Assembly (NCBI GenBank): GCA_002269645.1
Contig: NIVC01000433.1
Coordinates: 131,418 to 195,417 of the forward strand
Length of the DNA stretch: 64,000 bases
Direction of reading: 5' to 3'
Origin: Macrostomum lignano
Lineage: Eukaryota
The position numbers and the translations under genes were made by a program. The notes below the pieces were generated by a model, which was not told the DNA's origin, did not search any database, and saw nothing but the letters and a program-made list of their open reading frames with translations. Positions 3,239 to 53,334 of this stretch are shown piece after piece (within the stretch, counting starts at the first letter, position 1; every line of letters starts with the position of its first letter).

Positions 3239-4546
3239 ATGGCCTGCTTCAACGCCTCCTTGGAGAGCTTAAAACGCCTTAGCGATGGAAGATTGTTTTT
3301 AAAACTTTTCGTCTGCACCATTATGAGTTTGGTAACCATAGCAACAATTACCGGCAATATTCTCGTAATAGCGTCGGTTATTAACTTTCGTCGTCTCCGA
3401 TCGCGAATCTGTTTTCACCTGCTGGCTTCGTTGGCTTCTGCCGACATCGCCATAGCCATTCTGGTGATGCCCTACTCCACCCTTTACCACATGCTCGGCT
3501 GCTGGCCCTTGGGCGACGCATTCTGCAAGTTCTACCTGTCCTCCGACATCATGTGCTGCACCTCTAGCATCCTTCATCTGTGCCTCATCAGTCTAGACAG
3601 ATACATCGCTGTCACCAACCCGTTGCACTACAAAGCTCTCGTTCGACCGCGCCGAATCTGGACAATGGTGGCAGCCGTTTGGATCATCAGCGTCGGCCTG
3701 AGCTTCGGTCCCGTCTTTTCCGGCTCGTTCGGCCTCACCCTGCCGGACCGAAATGCCACGGTAGCTGCGTCCACCACCGCCCAGGCCTCATGCCGCATGG
3801 ATGTCAATCAAGTCTACGCGGTGGTCTCCGCTCTGACGTCATTCTTCCTGCCCCTCGTGGTGATGACCATCGCCTACGTTCGAGTCCACCGGATCGCCAC
3901 TGCGCACACGGAGAGCGTTCGACGCCGTAAAGCGATCGCGTCGCTGTCCAGATCGAGCGGCGACCAGTCGGCCACTGGCGGCGTCAGGAGCCTCGTGCCG
4001 CAGAGCCTGCGAATGAGCAACAGCGAGACCAAGGCCACGAAGACTCTGGGCCTCATCCTTGGCTGTTTCTACGCCTGCTGGCTGCCGTTTTTCCTGCTCT
4101 ACGTGGCCTGCCCGTTCGTTAGCGACAGGTGCGCGTCTCTGCCCACCTGGCTGATGCCCCTAGTGACGTGGATTGGCTACGCGAACTCCGGCGTCAATCC
4201 GGTGGTTTACTGCTCAAATCAGCGCGAGTTCCGCCTGGCCTACCTGCGCCTGCTCGGCTGCCGGAAGGAATCCGACCTGCAGTATCTGCGATCCGAGCGC
4301 AACACCATCAGCCTGTGCCGTCGGGCCAACGACTACCAGCTTAGCAGCCAGCTTAGCAACAATGTCCAAGCGAGAATTGAGCGAGTTGTAAACCCGAGAG
4401 CAGGTGAAAATTGCTTAGGCCTGAGCGATGGCCGTAGTCTAGGCGACATGCCGCTAACAGATATTGTTTGCAACGATCCGGAAGTTGAAATGTCTCAATC
4501 TGAGCAATCGTCGTCTGTGCATCAGTTTAAAGACGGAGAAGTTTAG
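3239..4546 (+). CDS. Intronless class A biogenic-amine GPCR (beta-adrenergic-like octopamine or D1-like receptor), 435 aa
   Basis: Seven hydrophobic helices. TM1 GN, TM2 LASAD, TM3 Asp in DIMCCTSSIL, DRY, TM5 SALTSFFLP, TM6 CWLPFF, TM7 WIGYANSGVNPVVY. Confidence 0.93.
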   Translation: MACFNASLESLKRLSDGRLFLKLFVCTIMSLVTIATITGNILVIASVINFRRLRSRICFHLLASLASADIAIAILVMPYSTLYHMLGCWPLGDAFCKFYLSSDIMCCTSSILHLCLISLDRYIAVTNPLHYKALVRPRRIWTMVAAVWIISVGLSFGPVFSGSFGLTLPDRNATVAASTTAQASCRMDVNQVYAVVSALTSFFLPLVVMTIAYVRVHRIATAHTESVRRRKAIASLSRSSGDQSATGGVRSLVPQSLRMSNSETKATKTLGLILGCFYACWLPFFLLYVACPFVSDRCASLPTWLMPLVTWIGYANSGVNPVVYCSNQREFRLAYLRLLGCRKESDLQYLRSERNTISLCRRANDYQLSSQLSNNVQARIERVVNPRAGENCLGLSDGRSLGDMPLTDIVCNDPEVEMSQSEQSSSVHQFKDGEV

Positions 4547-5435: not shown

Positions 5436-7419
5436 GTTAAAAAGCTGCAGTGTGCTTGGATAATTTTTCACCAAAATCACTAGCTGTCATCCTACCTTTG
5501 AACAATATTAGTCAGTTGTTTAGGTAAGTCAGACCTTCCTGAGATTCCTTCAGTCTTCAACTGGGTTCATTTCCGTTTGGAAATCAGCCCTGATCTTAGC
5601 CAGCAAATTCTGAAATATTCGCTCAACTGAGCCAAAATGAATGAAAGAACAGTATTAATTTCCTTCTTTACCATAACTGGGAACCGATTTAGAAATAATT
5701 AATTAGACGTACAAGCAAAAGTACAATTGCATAACTTGTTTAAATATGAAATAACGTTTACGAAGCTTTCAAAGAATAATAGGTAATACGCCAAAAAAAG
5801 AACTTGTTCTCTGAATCTTAATTAGAGTACTAATGATATCAAGATGACGACTGAATGCTTGGGAGACCTGCTGAGGATGTTCAACAGTCGAGGCTTGATC
5901 AGCGAAACTCCAGAAATTTGCAACAGGGTGTCCATAGTCACCTGGCGCCACCTGTTGAAGGTCCAGAAGCTCCGCCTAAGTGAAGGCCAGTTTGTTCGCC
6001 TGTGGCCCATCTAGTAGTATAGTATTCCCTACTATTCTTAATATTAGGCTATGCACGTCTACTGTATTCAGTAACGGACAATGACCAAGCCAGTCTGTTT
6101 TGACTTCCGACTGCGTTATTTTCTGACTGATTATAGTTTTCTATACATGTTCAGTGTCGATTAATAGCAAAGCTGAGCATTAATCGTTTTTACTCGAGAC
6201 AACAAACTTCTGAGCAACCCAGTGAAAGAATTTTTAGTTTTCATGCAGCCAATCAAGAGATATTGACTTTTGAGTTTTGGCCTCCAGCCAATTTTACACG
6301 ATTTTACACGAGTGTAGCGTCAATTTCTACTCTAGTTGTCCATAGCGTTGCTCCGCTCCAGCGCATCAAAAAAATTGTCAGGGGGGGGGGATTTCTTCCT
6401 TTCTAACGGTTAAGGCGCTTGAACACGGAAGTCCAGAATGTGATTTAGTGCTAGAGCAACCCCCCAGCGCACAGGTGAGCATGCATTATTAAGATTATTA
6501 TATAGGCTTGTTTAAACAAATCCTAGAGTTAGATAAAGCTATCTGCAGTGTAACATATAGCCGGAGTTCGATAAAGGCTGATTTCAATACTCGTAACTGG
6601 TAAACACTCATGGCGTAACCCAATACCGAAAACCGAGCATGTAGTGGTTATTAAACCAGCCGGGCAGAGGTCTCTCAGAGACCTTCAGGCTATGAGTTGA
6701 CGGATGCTGGGGAAAAAGAGGCTGCACGAGATGATGGAGATTTAATAAGCCACCAACATCTGATGCAGCGTGGCTAATGCGTTATCTGAGCTCATTTTTG
6801 GTCGCCTATAATTAGCTGCGAGCATACATTCCATCTCTGCAGGGTATTGAGATTAGCTTCATTAATAAACAGGATTAGTCGTTATGCAGCACGCAAGCAG
6901 GATAACCTCCTTGTGTGACCTCCATCAGATCCACTGCTATTCGTTTGGACAAGCATTCACTCCCCCCGAATTGATCTTCTTCAGAGTCTCAGCTCAGTTA
7001 TTGACTTACCTGTGTGACAAAGATTACTGCGTGTATCTGTGTGGAATCTTGAGACTAAAGAAGATGGAGAGGGAGAGGGAGGGATAGCTAGTGGGAGAAG
7101 GAGAGAGGGAGGGCACCCCAATCTCAGATGCTGACGCGGTGAAAGGACTGATAAAAGTCAATTTAGTTAATGTTGCCGATATTTCGAGTTAGGCTACTCT
7201 TCATCAGGGCACTATGCGATTAAAATTTATTTGGCGTGAATTGCCGTCAATATTTAAAGGCCATAACGACAGGGACGATCGATAAAGGGAGATTGAGAGT
7301 GCCCAAGCGCATAAAACAGTACACATGGCCAGTACAATAGAGACTCCAAGAATGCAGAGTGGGTGGCTAGATCCTGTGCAAGCGAGCCGGCTAAACGACC
7401 TTAAAGAGAGGGAGGGAGA

Positions 7420-8588
7420 AGCAAGGAGAGCGAGAAGCTGATGGAGAAGGAGGGGGAGAAGGAGAGGGAAAGGGAGAGAGGGAGAGGTGAGAGGAGAGAG
7501 GGAGAGGAGAGAGGGAGAGGAGAGAGGTGAGAGGAGAGAGGGAGAGGAGAGAGGAGAGAGGGAGAGGAGAGAGGTGAGAGGAGAGAGGGAGAGGAGAGAG
7601 GGAGAGGAGAGAGGAGAGAGGAGAGAGGGAGAGGAGAGAGGAGAGAGGAGAGAGGTGAGAGGAGAGAGGAGAGAGGAGAGAGGTGAGAGGAGAGAGGTGA
7701 GAGGAGAGAGGGAGAGGTGAGAGGAGAGAGGTGAGAGGAGAGAGGTGAGAGGAGAGAGGAGAGAGGAGAGAGGTGAGAGGAGAGAGGTGAGAGGAGAGAG
7801 GTGAGAGGAGAGAGGTGAGAGGAGAGAGGAGAGAGGAGAGAGGTGAGAGGAGAGAGGTGAGAGGTGAGAGGAGAGAGGTGAGAGGAGAGAGGTGAGAGGA
7901 GAGAGGAGAGAGGAGAGAGGTGAGAGGAGAGAGGTGAGAGGTGAGAGGTGAGAGGAGAGAGGTGAGAGGAGAGAGGTGAGAGGAGAGAGGTGAGAGGAGA
8001 GAGGTGAGAGGAGAGAGGTGAGAGGAGAGAGGTGAGAGGTGAGAGGAGAGAGGTGAGAGGAGAGAGGTGAGAGGAGAGAGGTGAGAGGAGAGAGGTGAGA
8101 GGAGAGAGGTGAGAGGAGAGAGGTGAGAGGAGAGAGGTGAGAGGTGAGAGGTGAGAGGAGAGAGGTGAGAGGAGAGAGGTGAGAGGAGAGAGGTGAGAGG
8201 AGAGAGGTGAGAGGAGAGAGGTGAGAGGAGAGAGGGAGAGGTGAGAGGAGAGAGGGAGAGGTGAGAGGAGAGAGGGAGAGGTGAGAGGAGAGAGGGAGAG
8301 GTGAGAGGTGAGAGGAGAGAGGTGAGAGGAGAGAGGTGAGAGGAGAGAGGAGAGAGGAGAGAGGTGAGAGGAGAGAGGTGAGAGGTGAGAGGAGAGAGGT
8401 GAGAGGAGAGAGGTGAGAGGAGAGAGGAGAGAGGAGAGAGGTGAGAGGTGAGAGGAGAGAGGTGAGAGGAGAGAGGTGAGAGGAGAGAGGTGAGAGGAGA
8501 GAGGGAGAGGTGAGAGGAGAGAGGGAGAGGTGAGAGGAGAGAGGGAGAGGTGAGAGGAGAGAGGGAGAGGTGAGAGGAGAGAGGGAGA
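7420..8588. repeat. Polypurine low-complexity array (GAGGAGAGAGGT / GAGAG units)
   Basis: About 1.2 kb of nearly pure G/A. The 414-aa L/S/P ORF on the minus strand is an artefact of this repeat. Confidence 0.97.
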
Positions 8589-10470
8589 ATCTGAAATGGC
8601 ACAGCTGAAAAAGCGAGAGAGGCGAGACTGTTCAATCGGTCAGCACGATCTGTCAGTCCACCAGGTACATCGCGGCAGCATCAGGAACGGGTCGGATCTC
8701 CGCCGAGAGAAGATCGAGAGATGAGCCACTCAAGATTGCCTGGCAACAAGCACGTGCCCGAACTCGCGGCTCAGTACGAAAGATGTTTTAACTCGTCGCG
8801 ATTGGCCGCGAGTAGCCAACAGCTCTGCACCAAACGATCGACAACAAAATTATGAAAAAACATGTTTTTCTGCTGGTTTGAATCTCATTTTTTAGCTTCG
8901 ATCCTTCTATAGGCTGGGATTGACTCTCCCCTCGTACTTGAAGACGTGGCTAAGATTTTCGGAGTGCCTTCCCAACAAGCTATTTTTGCCTTGGATGCAA
9001 AATTGACTGCCAAGCCCTGCCTCAGCCTGCTGGCTAGAAAAACTTTGATTAATTTCGCTTCATCTGTGTGCGTAGCCAACAGCAGAATAAAGTGCAACTC
9101 CGTATATCCAGGCCTTTCAAATCAATTTAGATGTTAGTTTTGAGGTGTGATAAGAATTATATTTGCAGTCTCCCATACTAACTGGTTCGAGTCCGTTTGG
9201 CGACGTAAGAGAACGATCTTAGAGTGCGAGTATCTGATCAATTATTGCTCAATACTGTACTCGGTAAATATTGTGTCTTCCTCTTCCACTCAAATAATCA
9301 TGGTTAGTCTCTATGAGCGTATGTCGTGATTGATTTCAGGAAAAAAACGGCTTGACCGATTTTATTGAGACTTGCACAGTTCGATCAGAATTTTTCTGTG
9401 ACGGTACAATGGTACATGTGTCCTGGCTTAGAAATTGCTCAATGCTTAAAGGGATTAGTATAGGAAAAACATGCTTTTTGTAAAGCAGAATCTTAGATTT
9501 TGAAAATGTATTGTGATCATTGTAGAGAGAAAAACTGACTGACTGAATGATGGCTTCAAGACAAAGATTCAAAACTATGATCAGGATTCTGGAAAATGAA
9601 AATTCTAGGAGATGAAGACTCCAGGAGACAGTTGTTCTTAGAAATTGAGATTAAATAATAAATTAAAATTCTAAAAATAGGGATTCTGGTACTTAAATAA
9701 TTACAAAATACAGATTCCAGAAATGAGAGGGCGTATATGTAGCAGTGATTCTACAAAGAAAAAATCTACACAGACCCTACATGCACCGATTTCTTAGAGT
9801 CACCTTGGGCATCAGAAAAACCGCTGGTTCCGAGAATCAACAAATAAAGAGGGTGGCGAAGCGTACAGGACTGTAAAAAACTCAAGTTTAATGCTAATAA
9901 ATTCTCTGTAAACCTACCTCAAAATGGAACACATCCACAGAAGTGAATGCACATTGATGTCCGAAAGTTCTAATTCCAATTAATTCTAATTGCAAGTTCG
10001 GACAGATCGTGATTGAGAAATAATTAACAAATACGTCAAGCCCCCACTTCATCAGCGGTTAATAAGTTCCACGCTCAAACGATTCGTGCTAATTGAGTTC
10101 AAATGAGGACACCTCGTCCACAAAGTCGCATTTTCAAAGAAAAAAGGGGACTCCAAAGAGCCGGTTCTTAAGTTCTTCTCCGCCAGGATGTTATTAAAAC
10201 AAAATCCTTATTTGGCAACTGTCGAGCTCAGTCGAACGTGCGTGCGTCTTATTAGAAAACTATCGACCAAACAACCCGCGACACACAGACAGTCAGGAAT
10301 GTGTAGATAACTTAAATGTTAAATTTGAAAAGGCGCGAAGGTTAGTTTTGTTATAACTGCGCGATGCCGTTCTCAAACTAAACCCAATCGACGCATCGAA
10401 AATGCAGTTGCTCATGTAGCAGAATTTCTCAAGTACATTTTGCTCTTTTTGTTTGAAAAATAGACAGCTC

Positions 10471-13400
10471 CTAAGAGCGCAGAGTGTCCAGAAGAGCTGA
10501 GCAGTTTGGTAGTTCGCCGTCAACTTTTTCCCGGTACGCTTGCAGGATCCCGGATGCCAGCCGGAATGCAGGCAGTTCGCCAACCTGAGCTGCGCTGGAA
10601 CAGTTGAACACCTCGTTGAGCTGCCACTGACGCCACAGATCCTCAGCAGATTCCGAGTTGGTGGCCGAATGTTCGTCAACAAACTTCCAGACTGCCTGCT
10701 TGTGTGCTGACACTGCCGCCTCGTTTGGTAGCGCAGAGTCTACCGACTCCCACGGCAGATGCTTCGGTGACATCAAGCTGCAGGCGATGTACACTAGACT
10801 CTCCAAATCAGCGTAGGGAGCTTCCAGTTTGACGTTCGGAGAAAATCGAACAGCACCGTAGACCAGACTGCGCTCTCGTTCACCCCGATAGATCAGGCAG
10901 TTTCGGGTGAGCGGCTCTGCCGAAGCAAAGTCGGCCAAAAGCATCTCGTCGGATCCGAGCAGTTCGAAACTCGACGGTTGAAGGCAGCCGTGCGACCAGC
11001 CGGAGTTGTGCAGCTGGCCGACTTTGTTCAGCATGTCGCGGCACAGTCTCACTGCTGCTGGCGAGTCCAGGCACTTGACCGATGCTCGGTTGCCGTCTGT
11101 ACAATGGTTGTTTGACAAGGATTGGGAATGGTAAAGCAGCGATGGAGTGTCAGAGATGACAGCTACGGAGTGTCAAGGAAACACAGCGATGGAGTGTCAG
11201 GGAAACACAGCGATGGAGTGTCAGAGAAACACAGCGATGGAGTGTCAGGGATGACAGCTACAGAGTGTCAGAGAAACACAGCGATGGAGTGTCAAGGAAA
11301 CACAGCGATGGAGTGTCAAGGAAACACAGCGATGGAGTGTCAGGGAAACACAGCGATGGAGTGTCAAGGAAACACAGCGATGGAGTGTCAGGGAAACACA
11401 GCAATGGAGTGTCAAGGAACCACAGCGATGGAACATAAGGGAAACACAGCGATGGAGTGTCAAGGAAACACAGCGATGGAGTGTCAAGGAAACACAGCGA
11501 TGGAGTGTCAGAGAAACACAGCGATGGAGTGTCAGGGAAACACAGCGATGGAGTGTCAAGGAACCACAGCGATGGAGCATAAGGGAAACACAGCGATGGA
11601 GTGTCAGGGAAACACAGCGATGGAGTGTCAAGGAACCACAGCGATGGAGCATAAGGGAAACACAGCGATGGAGTGTCAAGGAAACACAGCGATGGAGTGT
11701 CAAGGAAACACAGCGATGGAGTGTCAGGGAAACACAGCGATGGAGTGTCAAGGAAACACAGCGATGGAGTGTCAGGGATGACAGCTACGGAGTGTCAGAG
11801 AAACACAGCGATGGAGTGTCAAGGAAACACAGCGATGGAGTGTCAGAGAAACACAGCGATGGAGTGTCAGGGAAACACAGCAATGGAGTGTCAAGGAAAC
11901 AACGATGGAGTGTCAAGGAAACACAGCGATGGAGTGTCAAGGAAACACAGCGATGGAGTGTCAGGGAAACACAGCGATGGAGTGTCAAGGAAACACAGCG
12001 ATGGAGTGTCAAGGAAACACAGCGATGGAGTGTCAGGGAAACACAGCGATGGAGTGTCAGGGAAACACAGCGATGGAGTGTCAAGGAAACACAGCGATGG
12101 AGTGTCAGGGAAACACAGCGATTAAGTGTCAGGGAAACACAGCGATGGAGTGTCTGGGAAACACAGCGATGGAGTGTCAGAGAAACACAGCGATGGAGTG
12201 TCAGGGATGACAGCTACGGAGTGTCAGAGAAACACAGCGATGGAGTGTCAGAGAAACACAGCGATGGAGTGTCAGAGAAACACAGCGATGGAGTGTCAGG
12301 GAAACACAGCAATGGAGTGTCAAGGAAACAACGATGGAGTGTCAAGGAAACACAGCGATGGAGTGTCAAGGAAACACAGCGATGGAGTGTCAGGGAAACA
12401 CAGCGATGGAGTGTCAAGGAAACACAGCGATGGAGTGTCAGGGATGACAGCTACGGAGTGTCAGAGAAACACAGCGATGGAGTGTCAGGGAACCACAGCG
12501 ATGGAGCATAAGGGAAACACAGCAATGGAGTGTCAAGGAACCACAGCGATGGAGCATAAGGGAAACACAGCGATGGAGTGTCAAGGAAACACAGCGATGG
12601 AGTGTCAAGGAAACACAGCGATGGAGTGTCAAGGAAACACAGCGATGGAGTGTCAAGGAAACACAGCGATGGAACATAAGGGAAACACAGCTACGGAGTG
12701 TCAAGGAAACACAGCGATGGAGTGTCAGGGAAACACAGCAATGGAGTGTCAGGGATAAGAGCTATGGACCATCAGGGAAACACTCGGTGGAGTGTCAGGA
12801 AAGGCAGCTTAGAGGGCACAGCCATAGCAAGCCAAACTCACTAATGACTCTCTGCAGCGAATCTTCAACATACTGACAGAGCAGAAAGTGCTGCCTATGC
12901 AACACCAATTGCCTATCATCATTCTTGTTCTCGGAAACCACTCGCCAACAGTCGTTGCCAAGGCAGCCAAATAGGTAGGGTCGGGGAAACGCCGAAGGAT
13001 CTTGGACGGCTCTGAGAATGGCCCATTCGCGAAGCAGTTGCAGCGGCTCGGCCGGGTGAGCGCGGGCGTGCACTTTTAGCAGCACCTGTTGGCCGCAGCG
13101 CAGGGTTCTGGGGTCCAGGCACTGCAGCATCTGGTTGGGTTGGAACGAGGAAAGAAAAGATTGAGAAATCAACGTTGGAAGAAGTTGGAACTTGCATTGT
13201 TACTGTAAGTAGTGAGCTTGAACTGTAGCATTTTCGGTCTGAACAATGTCGGATGTCGAATGATGTTCCTAGTTATTCAGGTGTATTACTGTTAACAGCC
13301 CTGATTTTGTGCTCTAAGTACCTCTATTGGTGTGTTGTTGAAGCATCAAATGATGTGCTGTTGATGTATCTAATAGTGTGTTGTTGCTGTATCTAATAGT

Positions 13401-14444: not shown

Positions 14445-15501
14445 TCATAGCGTCTTCATCACAGTTTTGATCACAGTTTTGAGCACAAAGATCAGGCACT
14501 CAAAATTCTTCATCGAGTAGGATAAAACAAGTGCGCTACGAGATCCAGATGCATTAAGATAGTAATAGAGACCTTGTGTGATAATATTGGGATATTCTCT
14601 GTAGACTCCGCTGGCGTCAATGAATGAGCACTCGCTGTACCACCAGCCAGCGGACCGTCCTTATGTGTGGAGCTGCCTCCGCTCCAGTTGTCATTGTCAG
14701 AGTCTGGAGTGCTGAACTGCCAGTTGTTCGGCGAGAAGTTCGAAGTAGTCATCTGTCCGACACTCGATCTAGTTGAGTCTAGCGGTCTCATCGAGCACCT
14801 GTACTTGTCGCTCGCTGGGCCAACAGAGAACGGAGCATTCTCAGCCCAGTACCAGGTGCCGCTCCAGTCGCTGAACTCCCAGCGGACTCTCCACACTCCA
14901 GTGGCGGTGAGCTGGTGGAGCTGCTCCAGTCCCATCCAGTAGTTGAGACTCTCGCCCTGACCGAATCCGCTCGCGTACTCCGCCCAGCTGCGATTGAAGT
15001 TGACGGAGCCGTCGAGTCTGTGCTGGAAGGTCGTCCAGCACTTCACCGGTTTTCTCATCTGCAATGGGCGATGCGGTGCTACGCTCGTACATTTTGTGCA
15101 CGCATATTGATGCGGTGCTGCATTTCGTGCACGCATATTGATGCGGTGCTGCATTTCGTGCACGCATATTGATGCGATTCTGCAAAGTGCAGAAGCCGCA
15201 AAGCAAAGCTCATCTCACTCACCCACAGCTGAGGCAGGCTGAAGTCGCTGGCGTGCCGGCACTTCCAGCCGGCGTCCATCGCTCCCCAATCGCAGGCCAG
15301 CAGTGAGCAGGAGCCCGAGGATGCGTCGAAGCAGACGGCTTCCGCGTTACCAGCAGAAGTCACGCAGTGAATGTCGTTGACCGCCAGCTTCACCGCCAGC
15401 ACCCAGTACTCGGCCAGGTGGCCTCGCTGGAGACTCCAGCAGGACTTCTCGGCCGTGGCAGCCGCTGCCATGACAGCGCAGATGATGAGCAGAGAATGCA
15501 T
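14445..15501 (-). pseudogene. Secreted fibrinogen-related domain (FReD) protein with Cys-rich N-terminal domain; frameshifted near 14662 (pseudogene or assembly error)
   Basis: Signal peptide MHSLLIICAVMAAAATA. Exon 15501-15223, intron GTGAGT...TTGCAG, exon from 15058. Motifs WTTFQHRLDGSVNFNRSWAEYASGFG, YWMGLEQLHQLT and FSTPDSDNDN; GWWYSECS...GVY continues in a different frame after a TAA. Confidence 0.8.
15090..15176. repeat. 31-bp repeat, about 3 copies, in the FReD intron
   Basis: CATTTCGTGCACGCATATTGATGCGGTGCTG repeated. Confidence 0.85.
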
Positions 15502-16619: not shown

Positions 16620-16840
16620 GGAGTTCTGTATTCAGCAGTAGACTTGTAAGTACGTACATTTACGTAGTTGCCTATGTATCTATGCATCTATGTATCTATA
16701 AATCTATGTACCGATGTACCTACGAGCGTATGCATCTATGCATCTGTGTAACTATGTATCTATGTACCGACGTAACCTATGTAATCTATGTATGTACACT
16801 TTATCTACCTAGCTTTTATCCCATTCTATCCCATCTATGT
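16620..16840. repeat. Degenerate (TATC/TATG)n microsatellite
   Basis: Visible tetranucleotide periodicity just upstream of the ENaC start. Confidence 0.7.
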
Positions 16841-16881
16841 TTAATATCATGCAGGCGGTCAGTCCAATTCAAAGGCTATCA

Positions 16882-19800
16882 ATGGCGGGGATTCTAGCGG
16901 AGGCCATCGCATCGAGTTCAGCTCACGGCATCAGCCGAGCGGCCGCCACCAGCTACAAAACAGTCCGCGTGATGTGGATTCTGCTGTTCTTCATCTGCCT
17001 GGGAATGTTTCTCAATAGTGGCATCAGTCTGGTGCTCAAACTCAGGGAGAACAACCTGACAGAGGAGTACCACCTGGATCAGGTGCCGTTTGTGCTCCCG
17101 GACCTGTACTTCTGCTCCAGCAACCCCTTCTCTGGCCGTTTTCCGTTCACGCTGACAAAATCAGAGGCCGACTTTTGATGTAACCACGCTCTGGTCGCGG
17201 GATACGGCAGGGGAAATTTTTCAAAAGTACCTCCGATCTCCGTGCACCTCCTGAGCAGAGCCGTCGAGACTGGGCCAGGTCTTTGACCAGGCCTGCTGAC
17301 TCCCGCTCTGCTGCACCCCCTTGATGCCTCGGCTCCGTCTCCCGCGCAGCCACACATGCCTTTCCGGAGCCCCTACCTCTCTGTACCTCACCCGTTCCTC
17401 TATTTCCTATGCGCTCTACCCTATTCATTATGCACTTTTCCCGCTTCCCATCTTTTTGTCTCTTTTTGCACTGTTTTCCTGCGCTGTCCCTCCCTCTTTT
17501 GGTATCTACTGACAGTACTTTGTGCGCTCACCGTCACCCCATTCCTACTAAAACTCCCAAACGGTGACGCAAGTCCTGTGACCCCTCTTTCCCCTCGATG
17601 ACTCATCGATGACTCACCACCCCCTCTTGCGCAATCTTTCTCATGCCATTGTTCTCCTCCCCAGATTTCTCATGCGACACCCACACCACCTCCGCTTCTA
17701 TTGTTCTCGTTTTTGATTCTTTTGTTCTCCTCTTCGCACCCAATTATCACATTTTCCCAGATTTTCTCTTTCTTTTGTTCTCGTTTTCGCACCCAATTAG
17801 CACCTTTTCTCCAATGTTTACTTTTCTATTGTTTTTGATTCTCCCCAATTATCCACGATTTCCATTTCCTTTGTTCTCGACCCCAGCCCCATTGTTCTCA
17901 ATGTTTGCTTGCGCAACACTTTCTCGACCTCCCGCTGCGCCAATTATTCCCCCACCCCACCCGGATTGCGCAATTTTCCCATTTCTCATGTTGCTATGCT
18001 GTTCTCATGCTTGTCATCATGACTCATTCTGACGTCATTCTGCCGGCATCCAATCAGAGAGAGGGAGTCATGGAAACGGCCTTGGAGCGGCGGCTGGGAA
18101 GGCTATATAAGGAAGCGGTTTTCGGCCTGAGAATCCTCAGAAGGCTTTTGTCTTGTCCCTATTGTGGACTTGCCGTCAGACCTCGATCTGACCCGTTCGT
18201 CTATAGGACGAACCTCTGCCGGTCCGCGGTCTGTTACCGCCAAGTTATCTTCAGCTCCCCAAACGAGTTCATTTGCCGGCCCGCGATCTGTTACCGCCAA
18301 TCATCTTCAGCATCGCCTGAACTACATCAGCGCCTCGTCGCTTCAGCGCATCGCCGCTTCACTGCCTGCCCGACTGCAGCCAACGGCCGCCCACGGTCAC
18401 TCCGTCGCTCTCTCTCTCTGTGCAGCCGCCGGTAAGTTCCTGTTACTAATTGTGCTCTAATTGCCTTTGCTTATCCGGGGTTCGCCTATTTTCCATTGCT
18501 TGATTAGAGAGCAGAGCCAATTGTGATACCGTATCTTTTGCTGTATTTATTTAATAGTGAAGCCGCCTAATTGCCTGATTATTTCGCCTAAGGGCCTAAT
18601 TATTAACTATTACTAACCTCCTCATTACTCACTCGTTCACCATCATTTCACTCATGGCTTGCTAAGCCTTTCCCCCGGGGTGGCAAAGCATAAGGAAGTT
18701 TGGGTAAGCTAATGGCCTCTCCCTGTGCAAAGCCCGCCTGTGTGTGCGTGCTGCGGGTCTGCGTGTGCGGGCAGTAGAGGGATTAGCGAGTCTTGGCACA
18801 GCATGGCAGTAGGAAGGTTGCAACCCCATGCTGACGCGTCCCTTCGCCCTGAGAAATCTAAACTATAGACAGTACATGTTCGCCTCACACTACTCTTAGT
18901 AATCAAAGCCGCAAGTCAGCCTCGCTCACAGCCACAAAGGATCCCCTGCTGAGAAATCCTCCAGATTGAGCCCAGAGTTCCCGATCATGCCCCAAGCAAA
19001 GACCCTGTACTCGGCTGCATGTGTCTCCCCTGTTAGCCTAAATCCCCTGGTAACCAATCCAGACGGGGCTCTATAGCCTCGAGAGGTCTGGTAGTAAGAT
19101 CCAGGTGCGCCAGGTCACATAGAGTGGTGGCAGCCACTCGGTCATGCTCTGACTGAGTGACCAACTATTGCACCTTGGCTACAGGTGGGGTCCATGTGGG
19201 TCCTTGGCCCTCTGGTCACGAAAGCGCTACCGAAGCTATCAATCATGTGGGCGGGACAGTCTGGTGCTGGAGGTCCGTCAGGTCATTGCCCGATCATAGG
19301 CAGCCTACGGTCATTGCCCCCTCTGGTCATGCGTTCGTCTCTCAACGGAGCGGACGGGCGACAAGGGCGGCTACATCACTTTCTAGATGCTGAAGTGCAG
19401 CGGCTTATCGATGTAGTTGACAGGATTTATGGCTACAAATCAAAACCCATATTTGCATCTGTGCGGGCATTTCTCTTTACATACGGCGTGCAGGCGGCAT
19501 TCCCTCATCATCTGCTGAAAAAGTACCTTCTGGTGAGAAAGGAGCAAGCGATTTTGGGAGCCACAGTTGGCGAAGGCACTCGCATTGAAAAAGTTGAAGT
19601 GAAGACAGTCGACAGCCCCGAGAATTTGATATGCTTCCAGCCGGTTCTGAGTGACCAGCACAAACAGATGTTGGTCAATTCCAGTGACGTACTGGAGATC
19701 CACTTAATGACGGATCCATATTTCCCGGATTTTAATTATTCTGGCTACTCAATGCGGCCAATTTCTGACGAGCAGAACAAATCTTATTCCTTCCTGGACT

Positions 19801-20689
19801 GGCACCCAAGCAAGGTAATTAGCCAGTTAAAAGCTTCCGGTTTCTCCATGCTAATCGTTCTTCCAGGCGCGTATTCGTCGCTAAAGTACGAAAATAATTT
19901 CCTCATGGCTCCCGGGAACGAGTACACAGCTGAGCATGCTAGAGAACTCCTGCAGTGAGGATCTTTACAACACACACTGCCACAGCGACCGATCGCCCGT
20001 GGTCTTCGCCAACTCACTGACTCGAAGGCAGGCAGAATTCACCTACAGCACCGCCGCCTACCTCTACGAGCAAATTAACAGCATTTTGATTGACAGGCTT
20101 GCAGCTGCCACGCCAATGTGCCGCACCCGTTGCCATGGCGATACCGTGACGCTCCCTGGCTTTAAAAAGTTTGCTGAAAGCGAAGATTTGCAAGAAATCG
20201 CCATGCAGAACGCGACGGACTATTGCAAAAGCAGGATACCCTGCTCATATCCGGAGTACAGCGCCAGCTTCTCATTCAGCAAGTGTCCCGGGCTCGGCAG
20301 CTCAACCGCAAAATTCTTTGCAAATTACGAAAATCGTCACTGGATACGTCACTGGATTCACCAAAGTTAGCAAGGAGATGGCGCCTGCGCTTCACCAGCT
20401 GATTGCAGTTGCAAAGCAGATCGATAGCGGCATTCACTCCGCTCATCTAGAGGGCATCTTTCGAAACTACGTAGCGGACTCCATGCTCAATGTCAAGATA
20501 TTCATAGCGTCGATCAAGTCGCCTCAGATCATGCTCACCTGGGCCTACACGTTCACAGATTTCCTGGCTGACACGGGCGGCCTGCTGGGCCTGTACATCG
20601 GCTGCAGTGTGCTCACCCTGTGCGAGCTGCTTTCAAGAGCTCCTCCACCACAGCGCGCTAGTCTTGCTCAAGTGAAAATCCGACGCTAG
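16882..20689 (+). pseudogene. DEG/ENaC (amiloride-sensitive sodium channel family) gene, interrupted by an insertion at 17176-19378 and two further frameshifts (near 19930 and near 20330)
   Basis: N-terminal SSAHGI (HG motif), TM1, PDLYFCSSNPF. C-terminal FLADTGGLLGLYIGCSVLTLCE (TM2 with GxS filter). Removing the insertion gives in-frame ...SEADF-LDAEVQRL.... The three downstream ORF segments lie in three different frames. Confidence 0.85.
17176..19378. mobile_element. 2203-bp LTR-like insertion (probable solo LTR or non-autonomous element) with 4-bp TSD CTTT
   Basis: Termini TGATGTAACC...GGCTACATCA form a 9/10 inverted repeat with TG...CA ends. CTTT lies at 17172-17175 and 19379-19382. Internal TATA-like CTATATAAG near 18103, donor-like GGTAAGT near 18431, and an internal direct repeat at about 18218-18312. 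Confidence 0.85.
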
Positions 20690-23705: not shown

Positions 23706-29729
<6,024 letters not shown>

Positions 29730-30284
29730 ATTAATGTTTTATTCATACTCATGTTTTAAACTTATTTTTTTCATATTTTATTAGCTCCGCAGTCAAACTA
29801 ATTTTGTTGATATTCATTTTGTTTTAAAATCATAAAAACAACATGAAACGCATTTAAGATAATTTGTTATTATCATATTTATACGTACGAATATAAGTTT
29901 CTAATTGCATTAGGTTAGCAATAATTGCCAAATTAATATTAATAATTTCATTATGCACATTTGTTCTGTCTAATTAACTGTTCCAGTCGCATTTCTGTCG
30001 GGCTCGAACTGAAGAACACAAAGGTGCAATTTCAAGTTTTACAAATTTAACTGTTTGCTTACTTATTTTCTATAAGTTTATAACTATATTAATGCAAGTA
30101 AGTGGTATTTGTTATAGTTAGTTCGCCTGCTGAGGTATAAATATACGTACCGGTGTACTTTTCAATCGTTTGTACTGTTGTAAATGCAGGCGGTGCTTGT
30201 AGTTTCCATTTTTGCTTTAAATTTAAAATTATACTAGGTTGTACTGCACAGTCAACGAATCCTCATTGACTTTGAGGTTCTATG

Positions 30285-31110
30285 AAACTCCGAAATCCCC
30301 AAAGCTACAAAATCTCCAAAAAGCTAAGAAATCCCCAAAAAGCTACAAAAATCCCCAAAAAGCTAAGAAATCCCCAAAAAGCTACATAAATCCCCAAAAA
30401 GCTAAGAAATCCCCAAAAAGCTACAAAAATCCAAAAAGCTACAAAATCCCCAAAAAGCTACAAATTTCCCAAAAAGTTACGAATTCCCCAGAAAGCTACA
30501 AATTTCCCAAAAAGCTACAAAATCCCCAAAAAGCTACAAATTTCCCAAAAAGTTACGAATTCCCCAAAAAGCTACAAATTTCCCAAAAAGCTACAAAATC
30601 CCCAGAGCTACAAAATCCCCAAAAAGCTACGAAATCCCCAAAGCTACAAATTTCCCAAAAAGCTACAAATTCCCCAAAAAGCTACAAATTCCCCAAAAAG
30701 CTACAAAATCCCCAAAAGCTACAAATTTCCCAAAAAAGCTACAAATTCCCCAAAAAGCTACAAATTCCCCAAAAAGCTACAAAATCCCCAAAAGCTACAA
30801 ATTTCCCAAAAAGCTACAAATTTCCTAAAAAGCTACGAAATTCCCAAAAAGCTACGAATTTCCAAAAAGCTACAAATTTCCTAAAAAGCTACAAAATTCC
30901 CAAAAAGCTACGAAATCCCCAAAAAGCTACAAATTTCCCAAAAAGCTACAAATTTCCCAAAAAGCTACAAAATCCCCAAAAAGCTACAAATTTCCCAAAA
31001 AAGCTACAAATTTCCTAAAAAGCTACGAAATCCCCAAAAAGCTACGAAATCCCCAAAAAGCTACGAAATCCCCAAAAAGCTACAAATCCCCAGAGCTGCA
31101 AATTCGCCAA
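30285..31110. repeat. About 19-bp minisatellite (AAAAGCTACAAATTTCCCA)
   Basis: Tandem degenerate copies. The 259-aa K/P/S-rich ORF is a repeat artefact. Confidence 0.93.
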
Positions 31111-33127: not shown

Positions 33128-35236
33128 TCAGATCACACGCTGCCTATCTCGAAGTCTATTAGCAATTCTGCTAACCAGACTCTCTTGAGCTCCTCTGTCA
33201 TCGGTGACGCCGCTGCCACCGCCACAGCCGCCTCTGTTGCCGCCGTCCTCATTTTGCTGCTGATTGAGTCGCCCGGCGATGTCGGCTAAAGCGGCGTCGA
33301 ATTTCTTAGCATCGACCAGCTGATCGGCGGAAATGTCCAGTCGTTGTTTCAGCACGTCTAGCAGAGCAGCTTGATTCTCTTGACGCTGCCGCGTGGTCTG
33401 GAAGTCTGCTTGGAGGGCTTCAATGCGAGACAGTGCCGCGGAGCAGACGTCCTTGATGGCGATGCTGGTGGCCGAGTGCTGTTGTTGACCACGTGGTGAG
33501 TTCGACCTGCGGCTGATTAACGTGTTATATTTCAACTTTCACATATTTAGTGACTAACAGGTGATTCTATTAGGTGTCTAACAGGTGATACTATTAGGTG
33601 TCTAACAGGTGATTCTATTAGGTGTCTAACAGGTGATTCTATTAGGTGACTAACAGGTGATTCTATTAGGTGTCTAACAGGTGATTCTATTAGGTGACTA
33701 ACAGGTGATTCTATTAGGTGTCTAACAGGTGATACTATTAGGTGTCTAACAGGTGATTCTATTAGGTGTCTAACAGTTGATACTATTAGGTGACTAACAG
33801 GGGATTCTATTAGGTGTCTAACAGGTGATTCTATTAGGTGACTAACAGGTGATTCTATTAGGTGTCTAACAGGTGATACTATTAGGTGTCTAACAGGTGA
33901 TACTATTAGGTGTCTAACAGGTGATTCTATTAGGTGTCTAACAGGTGATACTATTAGGTGACTAACAGGGGATTCTATTAGGTGTCTAACAGGTGATTCT
34001 ATTAGGTGTCTAACAGGTAGGTGTCTAACAGGGGATTCCGAACAAGCTGACTGCAACACAGCGGACACCCAAGACAGGTGCTCAGCGTACCTGCCAGCCG
34101 TATCAGCCGTCTGCCCTGGTGTCTTCAACAAGCCCAAGCTCTTGGCTAAGCGATCCACCGAATCTCCGTATTGCTGCTCCTGCTCCTGCTCTTGCTGTTG
34201 CTTTTGCTGTTGCTGCTGCTTTTGCTGTTGCTTCTGCTGTTGCTGGAGCCCAAGACCGGCGGTAGCGGTTGGCCACCTGGGTCCCGGGACTCGTCGTTGA
34301 GCCTGACGAAATTCACGAGTCATTCGCTCCCGTTCTCTGGCCTGCCTGTCCAGCTCGGCCTGAATTTATTTACAATTTAAAAAACAACGCATCGATCAGC
34401 TACTGACGAGTAACAATAAAAGAGAATGAATACTATTTTTGCGATGCACAGTGAAAATTAAAAATTTAGCAATAATTTTTCTTCTAAATTAACTATAACG
34501 AGATTTGAAAAGTAAAGGCCTCAAAGCTCAATCTATCTAGAAAAAACGCGACCTTTGTTAATACTAATTAACCCAATGACGACTTACACTGTAAGTAGAA
34601 GGACGGGAAACCTCGTTTCTTAGAAAAAAATTGAAGGCAGGCTTTTTTGTAAAAATACACTACGGAGATAGGAAGTTTTCATTTTTTCAGCACAAAAATT
34701 GCTATTGCTTTTGATAGGAGCCAGATCCAGTGTTTATCTTTTGATATGCTGTGCCTTTCTTATTGATCTATCGATATTTATAAAACTTTTCGTTCAAAGA
34801 GTTAGGATTCTATGTTAATTTTTTATTCTACGTACATTTGCACGTATCTAAAAACCATTGAAATGGCACGGCTTTAAACGAAAAGCTTTATAAAATATCG
34901 ATAGATCAATAAGAAAGACACAACATATCAAAAGATGAACACTGGATCTGCCCCCTTATCAAAAGCAATAACAATTTTTGTGCTGAAAAGATTTGAAAAC
35001 TTCCTATCTCCGTAGTGTATGTTTTCGGAAAAGCCTGCGTTCAAACACTTTCTAAGAAACGAGATTTTCCCTTCCACTTAAGTCGTCCTTGAATTTACCC
35101 TGACCAATAAAAATTATCGGCCTAAATTTATTTTCTCACCTTGTGCTGCTGCTCACTTCGACTCAGTTGCAATTTTAGCCGGCGAATTTCTGCTTCCAGC
35201 TGATTGGCGTTCTGCACCAGGGACGATGGGATTGGT

Positions 35237-35269: not shown

Positions 35270-38200
35270 CAGAAGGCGCTCGACCGCCTTCGGCAGGAGA
35301 GGCTGCGCTGATGCGAGTCCCGTAGCGACTGTCGAGCGACGGCCCCGTCTGTCGTGGTTGCCAGCGCCGTGAGTGTCAGCTCTGCGGGGCAGGCCGGGAT
35401 GCCTCATTGCGGAGGGCAGCGCGCCTTTGGGGGTGTCAGCGCCATTTCATTTGATTGTGGCCGCCACCATTTCATAATTGATTGTGGCCGCCATTTCATT
35501 TGATTGTGGCAGCCATTGTGGGGAGGTGGGCTGTGGGGTGGTGGTGCTGTGGGGAGGTGGGGGCTGTGTGGAGATGGGCTGTAGGGTGGTGGTGCTGTGG
35601 GGAGGTGGGGCTGTGTGGAGATGGGCTGTGGGGTGGTGGTGCTGTAGGGAGGTTGGGCTGTGGGGAGGAGGGGGCTGTGGGGAGGTAGGGCTGTGGGGAG
35701 GTGGGGGCTGTGGGGAGGAGGGGGCTGTGGGGAGGTGGGGGCTGTGGGGAGGTAGGGCTGTGGGGAGGTGAGGGCTGTGGGGAGGAGGGGGCTGTGGGGA
35801 GGTGGGGGCTGTGTGGAGGAGGGGCTGTGGGGAGTTAAGATAACTTATGCGAGCAGGCCAGAAAGCCAGGTGGTCCCCCAATCGGCACCCCTCACCACTG
35901 CTGACCATCGATGTCGTTCGAGCCCCGATTGTGCCGATTATACTCGTTGCCATGGAGACCGCTGTCGACCTCTGTCACCGACTTAGGCCGCTGCTGCTGC
36001 TGCTGCTGCTGCTCCACAATAGCAGCTGCAGACGCCCTCAGAGCTTGCAGCTCAATATTCTGCTTGTCCGCTTCTAAAAGACGCTGAGTCGCCGCTTCAA
36101 CGAATTGTGGCCAACGAGTGGCAAAGTAAAGAGACAGCTGTTGCTGCGGCTGCTGAACTGGGCGAACCGGCTGAGCAGCGCTGCGTTGGAGAGATTGGGA
36201 CCCACAGATGCTTTTTGAAATCTCTCCTGTGTTCTTGTAATCTGTTCTGTGATTTTGTAATCTGTTCTGTGTTCTTTTAATCTGTTCTGCGTTCTTGTAA
36301 TCTGTTCTGCGTTCTTGTAATCTGCTTTGTGTTATTGTAATCTGTTCTGCGTTCTTGTAATCTGCTTTGTGTTATTGTAATCTGCTCTGTGCTTTTTGTA
36401 ATCTTCTCTGTAGACACGAGATGCTGACTGTAATCTATAGACACGAGATGCTGTAATCTATAGACACGAGATGCTGTAATCTATAGACATGAGATAGTGA
36501 CTGTAATCTATAGACACGAGATGCTGTAATCTATAGACATGAGATGCTGCAATCTATAGACATGAGATAGTGACTGTAATCTATAGACACGAGATGCTGT
36601 AATCTATAGACACGAGATGCTGTAATCTATAGACATGAGATGCTGCAATCTATAGACATGAGATAGTGACTGTAATCTATAGACACGAGATACTGTAATC
36701 TATAGACACGAGATGCTGTAATCTATAGACACGAGATGCTGTAATCTATAGACACGAGATACTGTAATCTATAGACACGAGATGCTGTAATCTATAGACA
36801 CGAGATGCTATAATCTATAGACACGAGATAGTGACTGTAATCTATAGACACGAGATACTGTAATCTATAGACACGAGATGCTGTAATCTATAGACACGAG
36901 ATAGTGACTGTAATCTATAGACACGAGATGCTGTAATCTATAGACACGAGATACTGTAATCTATAGACACGAGATGCTGTAATCTATAGACACGAGATGC
37001 TGTAATCTATAGACACGAGATACTGTAATCTATAGACACGAGATGCTGTAATCTATAGACACGAGATAGTGACTGTAATCTATAGACACGAGATGCTGTA
37101 ATCTATAGACATGAGATGCTGCAATCTATAGACACGAGATGCTGTAATCTATAGACACGAGATGCTGTAATCTATAGACACGAGATGCTGTAATCTATAG
37201 ACACGAGATAGTGACTGTAATCTATAGACACGAGATACTGTAATCTATAGACACGAGATGCTGTAATCTATAGACACGAGGTACTGTAATCTATAGACAC
37301 GAGATAGTGACTGTAATCTATAGACACGAGATGCTGTAATCTATAGACACGAGATACTGTAATCTATAGACACGAGATGCTGTAATCTATAGACATGAGA
37401 TAGTGACTGTAATCTATAGACACGAGATAGTGACTGTAGTCTATAGACACGAGATGCTGTAATCTATAGACACGAGATACTGTAATCTATAGACACGAGA
37501 TACTGTAATCTATAGACACGAGGTACATGTACTGTAATCTATAGACACGAGATGCTGTAATCTATAGACACGAGATGCTGCAATCTATAGACATGAGATA
37601 GTGACTGTAATCTATAGACACGAGATACTGTAATCTATAGACACGAGATACTGTAATCTATAGACACGAGATACTGTAATCTATAGACACGAGATACTGT
37701 AATCTATAGACACGAGATGCTGTAATCTATAGACACGAGATACTGTAATCTATAGACACGAGATGCTGTAATCTATAGACACGAGATGCTGTAATCTATA
37801 GACACGAGATGCTGTAATCTATAGACACGAGATACTGTAATCTATAGACACGAGATGCTGTAAGCTATAGACACGAGATACTGTAATCTATAGACACGAG
37901 ATACTGTAATCTATAGACACGAGATGCTGTAATCTATAGACACGAGATACTGTAATCTATAGACACGAGATGCTGTAATCTGTAGACACGAGATACTGTA
38001 ATCTATAGACACGAGATGCTGTAATCTATAGACACGAGATGCTGTAATCTATAGACACGAGATGCTGTAATCTATAGACACGAGATGCTGTAATCTATAG
38101 ACACGAGATACTGTAATCTGTAGACACGAGATGCTGTAATCTATAGACACGAGATACTGTAATCTGTAGACACGAGATGCTGTAATCTATAGACACGAGA

Positions 38201-39826
38201 TGCTGTAATCTATAGACACGAGATACTGTAATCTGTAGACACGAGATTCTGTAATCTATAGACACGAGATGCTGTAATCTATAGACACGAGATGCTGTAA
38301 TCTATAGACACGAGATGCTGTAATCTATAGACACGAGAAACTGCAATCATCCAATTTGAGCAGCTCACCCCTGGACGCGCCCCTCACTGAGACAGTCGGT
38401 GGTCTCAATCATGGTCTCAGTGTCGGACCTGACGGTCTCCAGCATCGCCTCGAAGGCTGCCAGCAGGGAGCCGTCGCCATCCAGCTTTGCCGCTGTCAGC
38501 TCGGCTGCCAGCTTGGCGTTGGTGGCGGCGCTCATCAGCTGCAGCTGGCGGAGGCCCCTGCCGCTGCCCGACTGCGTGCTCGATGAGAACAGATTTATGA
38601 TCTTGCTCTTCTTCTTCTTTTGGGCCGACTGGCTGAAGTTTTAAAAAATCACCGTTTGTTCTTGCGGCTGATTGATTGCTGATCAATCTCTAGAAATCTC
38701 ACCCCGTGAGAACACGAGAACCTCTAGAAATCTCACCCCGTGAGAACACGAGAACCTCTAGAAATCTCACCCCGTGAGAACCCGAGAACCTCTAGAAATC
38801 TCACCCCGTGAGAACCCGAGAACCTCTAGAAATCTCACCCCGTGAGAACCCGAGAATCTTTAGAAATCTCACCCCGTGAGAACCCAAGAACCTCTAGAAA
38901 TCTCACCCCGTGAGAACCCGAGAATCTTTAGAAATCTCACCCCGTGAGAACCCGAGAACCTCTAGAAATCTCACCCCGTGAGAACCCGAGAACCTCTAGA
39001 AATCTCACCCCGTGAGAACCCGAGAACCTTTAGAAATCTCACCCCGTGAGAACACGAGAATCTCTAGAAATCTCACCCCGTGAGAACCCGAGAACCTCTA
39101 GAAATCTCACCCCGTGAGAACCCGAGAACCTCTAGAAATCTCACCCCGTGAGAACCCGAGAACCTTTAGAAATCTCACCCCGTGAGAACACGAGAACCTC
39201 TAGAAATCTCACCCCGTGAGAACCCGAGAACCTTTAGAAATCTCACCCCGTGAGAACCCGAGAACCTCTAAAAATCTCACCCCGTGAGAACCCGAGAATC
39301 TCTAGAAATCTCACCCTTTGAGAACCCGAGAACCTTTAGAAATCTCACCCCGTGAGAACCCGAGAACCTTTAGAAATCTCACCCCATGAGAACCCGAGAA
39401 CCTCTAGAAATCTCACCCCATGAGAACCCGAGAATCTCTAGAAATCTCACCTTATGAGAACTTGAGATTCTCCAGAAATCTCACCCTTTGAGAAACTGAG
39501 AATCTATAAAACTCCCAACCTACCCGGCTCGCTCAGCCTCCAGCAGCTCAGCTGCCTCATCCTGAAACTCCTTCGCTTTGACCAGCGTGAGCACAGCCGA
39601 ACAGTTCTGCATCAGGGCGCACAGACTCACAAAGTCTTTGTTGCCTTTCTTAGTTAAAATGGCAGGATAGCCCATCCTGATGAAGTCTTTGTTCACGCTG
39701 CGAGAGATCCAGTTGAACACCTCCTGGGTCATGTTGTTGGCCTTGTCTTGATCGGCCGCGTCATTATTGGCGGTGACTTCTGACAGCTGCGACTTCATGA
39801 CCGACTGATTCGAACTCGGTGGCTTT
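33128..39826 (-). CDS. Glutamine-rich coiled-coil protein of unknown function; exons approx. 39826-39524, 38632-38369, ~36246-35906, 35381-35140, 34359-34091, 33506-33128
   Basis: Phase-consistent GT-AG chain. Poly-Q tracts and heptad-like segments (QLEAEIRRLKLQLSRSEQQHKAELDRQARERER; LSRIEALQADFQTTRQRQENQAALLDVLKQRL). The exon 3 acceptor is ambiguous inside a 20-bp repeat. Likely ATG at 39798. Confidence 0.65.
33550..34036. repeat. 24-bp intronic minisatellite (AGGTGTCTAACAGGTGATTCTATT)
   Basis: About 20 copies; produces the (ESPVRHLI)n ORF tail. Confidence 0.95.
34578..35087. mobile_element. About 510-bp foldback / MITE-like long inverted repeat in an intron
   Basis: Arms of about 220 bp. 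TACACTACGGAGATAGGAAGTTTTCA pairs with TGAAAACTTCCTATCTCCGTAGTGTA; TTATTGATCTATCGATATTTTATAAA pairs with TTTATAAAATATCGATAGATCAATAA. No clear TSD. Confidence 0.8.
35500..35830. repeat. G-rich 15-bp repeat (GGGGCTGTGGGGAGG)
   Basis: Runs of GGGG separated by short loops. Confidence 0.9.
36410..38340. repeat. 23-bp satellite (TAGACACGAGATGCTGTAATCTA) with a longer variant, about 80 copies, intronic
   Basis: 1.9-kb tandem array with palindromic TCTATAGA core. Confidence 0.97.
38688..39510. repeat. 34-bp minisatellite (CTCTAGAAATCTCACCCCGTGAGAACCCGAGAAC), about 24 copies, intronic
   Basis: Fills nearly the whole intron between exons 39524 and 38632. Confidence 0.96.
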
Positions 39827-40591: not shown

Positions 40592-51761
<11,170 letters not shown>

Positions 51762-52900: not shown

Positions 52901-53334
52901 AAGAGAAGAATTGAAGGACATCAAGTCATTGAGTTATAAAAGCTGGCTAACATGCAGATACAAACAGTTTGCAAGTTCACACAACTAACTAAGTCAGGCA
53001 TTCGAGCACTGGCAGATTAATTTGGTACAATACATTTCTACAATAATGATACAAGGAATAAAGCTGCATGGGGCCTGCATAAGAATAGAGGGCAGCAGGA
53101 AAAGAAAACACGAACACCACCGAATCCTGATTGATGTGATGAGGTAATGTATGTTGGTTTAGACCAAAGGACTCCATGTAGTTCATAAACTTGTTATCAT
53201 GCTTCATCTACGTCATCCAACATCGACGGTGCTTCTTTACTGGATACGCTACTGAGATAGGTAGTAGTATAGTGACGTGGTGGCTTGGCCACTAATGACA
53301 ATTGATCACAATAAAAAGTATATGACTTTGCCAC

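Follow-up and report, generated by a model that had tools for sequence, protein, structure and literature searches.

In a 64,000-nucleotide stretch of the flatworm Macrostomum lignano (assembly GCA_002269645.1, contig NIVC01000433.1, positions 131,418 to 195,417 of the forward strand), which was analyzed as a whole and is called the window hereafter, a gene of the ASC/DEG-ENaC channel family is interrupted by a segment of 2.2 kb. The locus raises the question of what kind of sequence entered the gene and what its entry meant for the channel. Our analysis reveals a discrete mobile element from a repeat family dispersed in Macrostomum, probably the solo long terminal repeat (LTR) of an LTR retrotransposon, and a host gene that is a pseudogene with four lesions, of which the insertion may be the first or a later one.

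The element comprises positions 17176-19378 of the window (2203 bp), starts with TGATGTAACC and ends with GGCTACATCA, the termini pairing as inverted repeats at nine of ten positions. Its first three bases (17176-17178) form the in-frame TGA at which the open reading frame (ORF) 16837..17178 stops, the host sequence reading GCC GAC TTT TGA. Joining 17175 to 19383 yields one open frame, KSEADFLDAEVQRL (TLTKSEADFLDAEVQRLIDV); in the window itself, the element is followed by CTTT CTA GAT. In all of these points, namely the ends of the 2.2-kb insertion, the duplication of CTTT, the in-frame TGA and the restoration of the frame on excision, a previous interpretation made without database searches (the sequence-only reading) proved correct to the base. 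The whole 64-kb window was scanned for TG...CA ends with at least 9 of 10 inverted-repeat positions, a matching 4-bp flank and a spacing of 1.5-3 kb, and the 17176-19378 element was the sole match; a BLASTN comparison of the element with the rest of the stretch likewise yielded no further copies. These boundaries are real and not a chance pattern, because an independent M. lignano copy shares both of them.

This second full-length copy (2218 bp) is located on contig NIVC01000110.1 and turned up in a 21.7-kb locus, which had been retrieved for the channel homologue and was then extended (extended locus L002, copy at 7438-9655, minus strand). Over element bases 1-2203 the two copies align collinearly, with 90.4% identity in aligned columns and 219 indel columns, and the similarity to the window copy begins at the first base of the element and ceases at the last. 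The NIVC01000110.1 copy runs from TGATGTAACC to GGTTACATCA, which form a perfect 10-bp inverted repeat, and it lies in intergenic DNA, flanked by its own 4-bp duplication TATC (...cTATC/TGATG...ACATCA/TATCg..., with slashes at the element ends). Both copies display the TG...CA termini with short inverted repeats that are expected of an LTR, and a target-site duplication (TSD) within the LTR range of 4-6 bp is present at two independent sites (CTTT/CTTT and TATC/TATC). That two independent insertions share their boundaries and differ in their 4-bp TSDs demonstrates a discrete element that integrates by a 4-bp staggered cut. A lack of other copies with the same termini had been named in the sequence-only reading as the finding that would speak against it; the NIVC01000110.1 copy, having the same termini and a different TSD, is the opposite of this. 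The copy lies 8.2 kb upstream of the intact ASC homologue (L002 17814-19517) and is an independent insertion, with flanks and a TSD different from those in the window; this proximity reflects a very high abundance of the family or is a coincidence. About 540 bp downstream of the copy, a unit of ~700 bp (L002 6190-6900, minus strand) is bounded by inverted repeats of ~100 bp (catttgggcttacgcgcattgaatttaatcc...) and looks like a small DNA transposon with terminal inverted repeats (TIRs).

A third, more diverged copy was identified as a fragment in the M. lignano gene model A0A1I8HW68 (P0008, UniRef), where it occupies residues 1700-1863 as a spurious exon. A 57-bp internal duplication is common to this fragment and the window copy and is absent in the NIVC01000110.1 copy. 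With two full copies of identical boundaries and this diverged fragment, the element belongs to a dispersed multi-copy family. The model itself is a 2356-aa 'DNA methyltransferase', which contains the translated element fragment within residues 1640-1865; just upstream of the fragment there is a motif which we take to be reverse-transcriptase-like and of the type found in long interspersed nuclear elements (LINE/non-LTR), and the whole model is probably a chimeric mis-annotation. Concerning the abundance of the family, ~53 kb of unique M. lignano DNA, of which ~45 kb (L001 and L003) had been chosen independently of the element, contained one solitary copy; as a rough estimate, one copy in ~45 kb points to hundreds of copies per genome or more, with a very wide confidence interval. 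Scans for exact patterns resulted in 0 matches to the element, both in metagenome contigs, for which two patterns were used, and in prokaryotic genomes and viral contigs. A comparison of the concatenated element ORFs with a set of 5.8 billion proteins, aimed at further loci, returned just one junk gene model without DNA, and none of ten window ORFs (0/10) was present in the protein collection when looked up exactly for the same locus or an empty site in other assemblies. Further flatworm DNA was sampled via relatives of a G-protein-coupled receptor (GPCR), resulting in matches from unrelated animals or without an element copy.

The interior of the element is non-coding and resembles an LTR with its U3, R and U5 regions. 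Its first ~930 bp are C/T-rich (A 16%) and contain the 53-bp tandem repeats (Table 1), of which the NIVC01000110.1 copy carries an additional 74-column block corresponding to ~1.4 units. Downstream of these, TGACGTCA, CCAAT and TATATAA are all three kept at aligned positions in the NIVC01000110.1 copy. The TATA box is that of a predicted internal RNA polymerase II (Pol II) promoter and would mark the U3/R border of an LTR; TGACGTCA resembles a cAMP response element (CRE-like), and the tandem repeats may be enhancer-like. The ATG-free run around the presumed leader measures 584 nt in the window copy and 559 nt in the NIVC01000110.1 copy, lengths which were equalled in 41 and 64 of 2000 shuffles, respectively, and are thus weakly significant. 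Between the two copies, identity amounts to 92.5-95.4% in the last 947 bp compared to 84.7-89.6% upstream, which means that the R/U5-like part is more conserved than the U3-like part. The sequence-only reading had likewise noted a TATA-like box and a GGTAAGT donor without gag or pol, and both motifs could be verified at 18104-18110 and 18431-18437.

No Pfam domain was detected in the element ORFs, and no ORF is conserved between the two copies, the ORFs being different. The sole stretch that is open in both copies is element 1982-2203, where the differences are non-synonymous almost without exception. No terminal direct repeats were found within the 2.2-kb unit, which rules out a complete LTR element of small size. 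An Rfam search of the element with a permissive E-value and a tRNA scan gave no match; a retrozyme- or Penelope-like identity was rejected, as no hammerhead was found. Heat-shock elements of the published pattern are likewise missing from the element. The conserved 3' part shows no excess RNA folding energy (z-scores 0.02 and 1.55), and a structured RNA was rejected on these values as an explanation for its conservation. As a side observation, the part of it at 19060-19340 contains several GGTCA/AGGTCA motifs and GGTCATTGCCC twice, and in a 10-bp hairpin stem of the same interval (CACTCGGTCA/TGACYGAGTG) a C-to-T change in the window copy would retain a G-U pair.

The solo-LTR interpretation is favored by the combination of TG...CA ends, 4-bp TSD, a variable, repeat-bearing U3-like part, a TATA promoter and a better-conserved downstream part. 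In LTRs of known elements R and U5 are usually more conserved than U3, and the inverted repeats extend over ~7 bp (PMC3601003). Many families of the Ty3/Mdg4 (Mag, CsRN1, Gmr1/Osvaldo), Copia and Bel/Pao types have been described in M. lignano, including solo LTRs near genes, and the Gmr1/Osvaldo clade alone consists of 40 families (PMC12801592). According to the proposed course of events, a full element would have been integrated by a retroviral-type integrase, whose 4-bp staggered cut would have generated the CTTT duplication at the TG...CA ends. Recombination between the two LTRs would then have deleted the internal gag-pol part and left one LTR together with its duplication, in sense orientation within an ASC/DEG-ENaC paralogue that has no introns and hence one coding exon. 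The remaining LTR would retain the look of a Pol II promoter unit with tandem repeats, TGACGTCA, CCAAT, TATA, leader and 5' splice site. That both complete copies are solitary and have kept their duplications is what one expects once LTR-LTR recombination has removed the internal part.

Several observations weigh against this interpretation. AATAAA, the best-conserved motif of animal Metaviridae and retroviral LTRs, is typical of these but not universal (PMC3601003), and neither AATAAA nor ATTAAA occurs on the promoter (plus) strand of either copy. Among 15 common poly(A) hexamers a single occurrence was found (ACTAAA, element position 372, in the window copy only), none being conserved, and a GT-rich stretch at 18735-18775 is not preceded by a recognizable poly(A) hexamer. 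The missing poly(A) signal is not strongly significant, since the A-poverty of the element lowers the chance expectation. Furthermore, an R/U5 made up of the ~1.24 kb that follow the TATA box and include a splice donor would be unusually long, and 2.2 kb is long for the LTR of an animal element. Finally, no copy paired around a primer-binding site, gag-pol and polypurine tract was seen in the ~53 kb of M. lignano DNA, both complete copies being solitary. With respect to the solo LTR claimed in the sequence-only reading, the discrete multi-copy insertion with TG...CA ends, 4-bp TSD, promoter-like region, 5' splice site and absent coding capacity could be established; the identity as an LTR, which lacks AATAAA, is probable.

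Among described systems, the element shares with the Ty3/Mdg4 solo LTRs of M. lignano (Mag, CsRN1, Gmr1/Osvaldo; PMC12801592) the host genus, the TG...CA ends, short inverted repeats, a 4-bp TSD and an internal TATA box, and like them it is found singly in or close to genes, with a 3' part more conserved than the U3-like part. In contrast to these LTRs it has no AATAAA, measures 2.2 kb with 1.24 kb past the TATA box, bears an internal conserved 5' splice site and contains no heat-shock element. A T-rich U3 as in the element has been described for the LTRs of rGmr1 (PMC3601003). In relation to the 137 published M. lignano LTR families, this resemblance is one of description, not of sequence. 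The Ulysses element of Drosophila, a gypsy-type member of the Osvaldo/Ulysses group, has LTRs of ~2.1 kb and a 4-bp duplication. The ~2-kb LTR and 4-bp duplication of the Osvaldo/Ulysses group correspond to the element, a likeness in these two lengths which provides a lead and not a test.

The solitary occurrence of both complete copies, 2.2-kb units that each have terminal inverted repeats of 10 bp and a separate 4-bp TSD, could also be explained by a whole non-autonomous element with short TIRs, for the movement of which a DDE transposase or integrase generating 4-bp duplications would be supplied in trans (cut-and-paste of the Ginger, Sola or Academ kind), or by a self-contained cassette of promoter, leader and splice donor. 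The lack of an LTR-type poly(A) signal in either copy and of paired copies among those seen would fit this explanation, and non-autonomous DDE transposons of the Ginger, Sola and Academ types have the 4-bp TSD, the TIRs, the absent coding capacity and the solitary units in common with the element. The inverted repeats of the element, however, extend over just 10 bp, whereas the TIRs of Ginger are much longer and begin with TGTNR. Its interior is laid out like U3-R-U5, with variable tandem repeats, CCAAT, TATA, leader and a conserved 3' part, unlike a deletion derivative of a transposase gene, and no relative of the element with coding capacity for a transposase was found. Moreover, TG...CA ends with inverted repeats of ~10 bp are the norm for LTRs (PMC3601003), and solitary units carry limited weight here, as two full copies were examined and solo LTRs usually outnumber full elements. 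We therefore consider such an element, the main alternative to the solo LTR, unlikely. A special and clearly less probable form of the same idea is a complete trans-mobilised 'mobile first exon', that is, an integrase-dependent cassette of enhancer repeats, promoter, ATG-free leader and 5' splice site without poly(A) signal, which would spread by read-out and splicing into downstream sequence. If this were true, the family as a whole would supply Macrostomum genomes with alternative promoters and first exons, and one trace of this would be the M. lignano model in which an element copy is fused to a DNA-methyltransferase gene.

Two further explanations would leave the channel gene itself unharmed or the insertion unreal, and both are very hard to reconcile with the data. 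For an intron or introner-type element that is spliced cleanly to give an intact channel, a GT (17180-81) and an AG (19386-87) do adjoin the two junctions. The GT at 17180 is the sole one near the 5' junction and lies past the in-frame TGA at 17176-78, and splicing there fails to restore the frame. Additionally, the homologous gene described below is intronless and continuous across the insertion site, the 2.2-kb unit is intergenic in NIVC01000110.1 with its own TSD, and the frameshifts downstream would persist anyway; a clean spliceosomal intron was excluded on these grounds. A mis-joined repeat copy would be an obvious suspicion in Macrostomum, whose genomes are repeat-rich and whose assemblies are redundant (PMC12801592). 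The perfect 4-bp duplication and the exact restoration of the frame are the signature of real integration and not of a mis-join, which makes an assembly artefact highly improbable as well. The solo LTR remains the interpretation that we prefer.

Both ends of the interrupted gene match the Pfam family ASC (PF00858), the N-terminus at profile positions 3-84 and the C-terminus at 399-453. These matches cover the first and second transmembrane segments (TM1 and TM2) and are collinear with family members, which identifies the gene as a DEG/ENaC gene. In the set of 5.8 billion proteins its sole match is M. lignano BOX15_Mlig026138g1 (P0001), which is collinear and 48% identical over 97% of the query and is encoded by an intact, intronless gene of 1704 bp. 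TBLASTN of P0001 yielded four collinear blocks at 16882-17172 (frame +1), 19383-19934 (+3), 19921-20337 (+1) and 20360-20629 (+2). The first two share one frame once 2207 bp are taken out, and the insertion point lies exactly between the residues aligned to P0001 97 and 99. With the element in sense orientation in the single coding exon, translation stops after residue 98, just past TM1.

DNA alignment with the P0001 gene uncovered three additional frame-breaking indels, at ~19936 (-5 bp), 20338-20359 (+22 bp) and ~20633 (+4 bp). The first frameshift falls within ~19925-19936, where the window has the 5-bp gap relative to the P0001 gene, and the frame of block 2 meets a TGA at 19956; the third falls within 20630-20636. 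As the three indels total +21 bp, the final frame is regained with stops in between, and the host gene has no single uninterrupted reading frame. The indels do not look like homopolymer errors, one of them being a 22-bp duplication-like insert. Short introns behind the changes of frame were rejected, because blocks 2 and 3 overlap and blocks 3 and 4 are just 22 bp apart without GT..AG. Given these three indels, the gene is a pseudogene whatever effect the insertion had. A knock-out of the channel by the insertion, as claimed in the sequence-only reading, is accordingly overstated, even though the TGA of the element does end the frame after TM1. The insertion does not seem to be ancient, as its duplications are perfect and the codons next to it intact. 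Positions of all features are summarized in Table 1.

Table 1. Features of the element and of the interrupted host gene (window positions; TM1 and TM2, first and second transmembrane segments).
Feature	Position	Strand	Remark
Host ASC/DEG-ENaC N-terminus with TM1	16882..17175	+	P0001 residues 1-97, 70% identity
Left target-site duplication CTTT	17172..17175	.	Same as 19379-19382; host coding sequence (GAC TTT)
Mobile element, non-coding, interpreted as probable solo LTR	17176..19378	+	Full-length homologue with same ends and own TSD
5' terminal short inverted repeat TGATGTAACC	17176..17185	+	Identical 10 bases in NIVC01000110.1 copy
53-bp tandem repeats, T/C-rich U3-like upstream part	17717..17833	+	Different unit numbers in the two copies
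Core promoter-like block: TGACGTCA (18030-37), CCAAT (18050-54), TATATAA (18104-10)	18030..18110	+	
Presumed non-coding leader exon	18135..18431	+	Placed by TATA position; within 584-nt ATG-free stretch
Consensus 5' splice site G/GTAAGT (cut after first G)	18431..18437	+	GGTGAGT in NIVC01000110.1 copy
Best-conserved 3' part, R/U5-like	18432..19378	+	Last 947 bp; by segment identity between copies
3' terminal short inverted repeat GGCTACATCA	19369..19378	+	GGTTACATCA in NIVC01000110.1 copy
Right target-site duplication CTTT	19379..19382	.	Repeat of 17172-17175
Host block 2	19383..19934	+	P0001 residues 99-279; in frame with block 1 after removing element and one TSD
Host block 3	19921..20337	+	P0001 residues 277-425; shifted one frame relative to block 2
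Frame-breaking insertion, 22 bp, CACTGGATACGTCACTGGATTC	20338..20359	+	Imperfect tandem duplication (CACTGGATACGT/CACTGGATTC)
Host block 4 with TM2	20360..20629	+	P0001 residues 426-515, 67% identity; another frame again
Host C-terminal tail	20630..20686	+	Readable after 4-bp insertion; FQELLHHSALVLLK in third frame matches FELIYICVSLLLK of P0001

In a stronger form of the sequence-only reading, the LTR insertion would be the event that put a functional channel gene out of action, and the LTR would at present drive a chimeric transcript of the 3' half of this gene. The insertion is indeed sense-oriented, its promoter-like block and splice donor face the 3' half of the gene, and a good acceptor-like ctttctAG stands right at the 3' junction (19386-19387). 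No mutation is present in the flanking ORF or in either TSD, and the insertion may therefore be recent. Judged from these motifs an LTR-driven chimeric transcript is conceivable. Solo LTRs of endogenous retroviruses (ERVs) act as alternative promoters with a splice donor in mammalian chimeric transcripts, and LTRs of the human T-lymphotropic and bovine leukemia virus type (HTLV/BLV) carry the major splice donor in R. The element resembles retroviral and ERV solo LTRs in its predicted promoter, non-coding leader and consensus 5' splice site facing a host exon. It differs from them in that the host gene downstream is frameshifted, for which reason a functional chimeric product is not expected. 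In detail, the first ATG past the junction (19388) is out of frame and followed by a stop after 9 codons, and the three indels at ~19936, 20338-20359 and ~20633, which are not of the homopolymer type, shift the frame of the 3' half. Because of both findings no useful chimeric product is to be expected, which renders a transcript yielding a useful 3' channel half implausible and the proposal in its entirety unlikely.

Taken by itself, it is nothing unusual in a repeat-rich flatworm genome for an ordinary transposon to sit in a decaying paralogue from a large channel family. The findings are of modest use for annotation, where they call for repeat masking of the segment and for labelling the host gene as a pseudogene, not as a truncated channel. 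The family combines an unusually long repeat unit, a conserved promoter-like block and splice donor with the lack of a recognizable poly(A) signal; the missing signal and the conserved donor are minor points, of concern to transposon specialists. Its motifs make the family a candidate source of LTR-driven chimeric transcripts, and the element might serve as a promoter for transgenesis, of a kind already exploited in M. lignano (PMC12801592).

Beyond the element and its host gene, the window contains an intact single-exon, aminergic-like GPCR gene of the rhodopsin family at 3239-4546 (plus strand), 68% identical to an M. lignano protein, an exon for a fibrinogen C-terminal domain at 14510-15163 (minus strand), protein-kinase exons with a low-complexity intron between them at 24722-25819 (plus strand) and an exon of a neutral/alkaline ceramidase at 45931-46362 (minus strand). 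Strong GC and AT skews mark the region 7000-9000. Tandem repeats form large arrays at 11137-12808, 36407-38348, 38685-39520, 55291-56819 and 59267-60212, in which shifted copies are 87-94% identical. Long open frames of short peptide-like repeats (such as PKSYKFPKKLQ and SPVRHLIE) were observed at 30239-31018, 33547-34323, 43113-43502 and 52193-52924, and these look like minisatellites and not genes.

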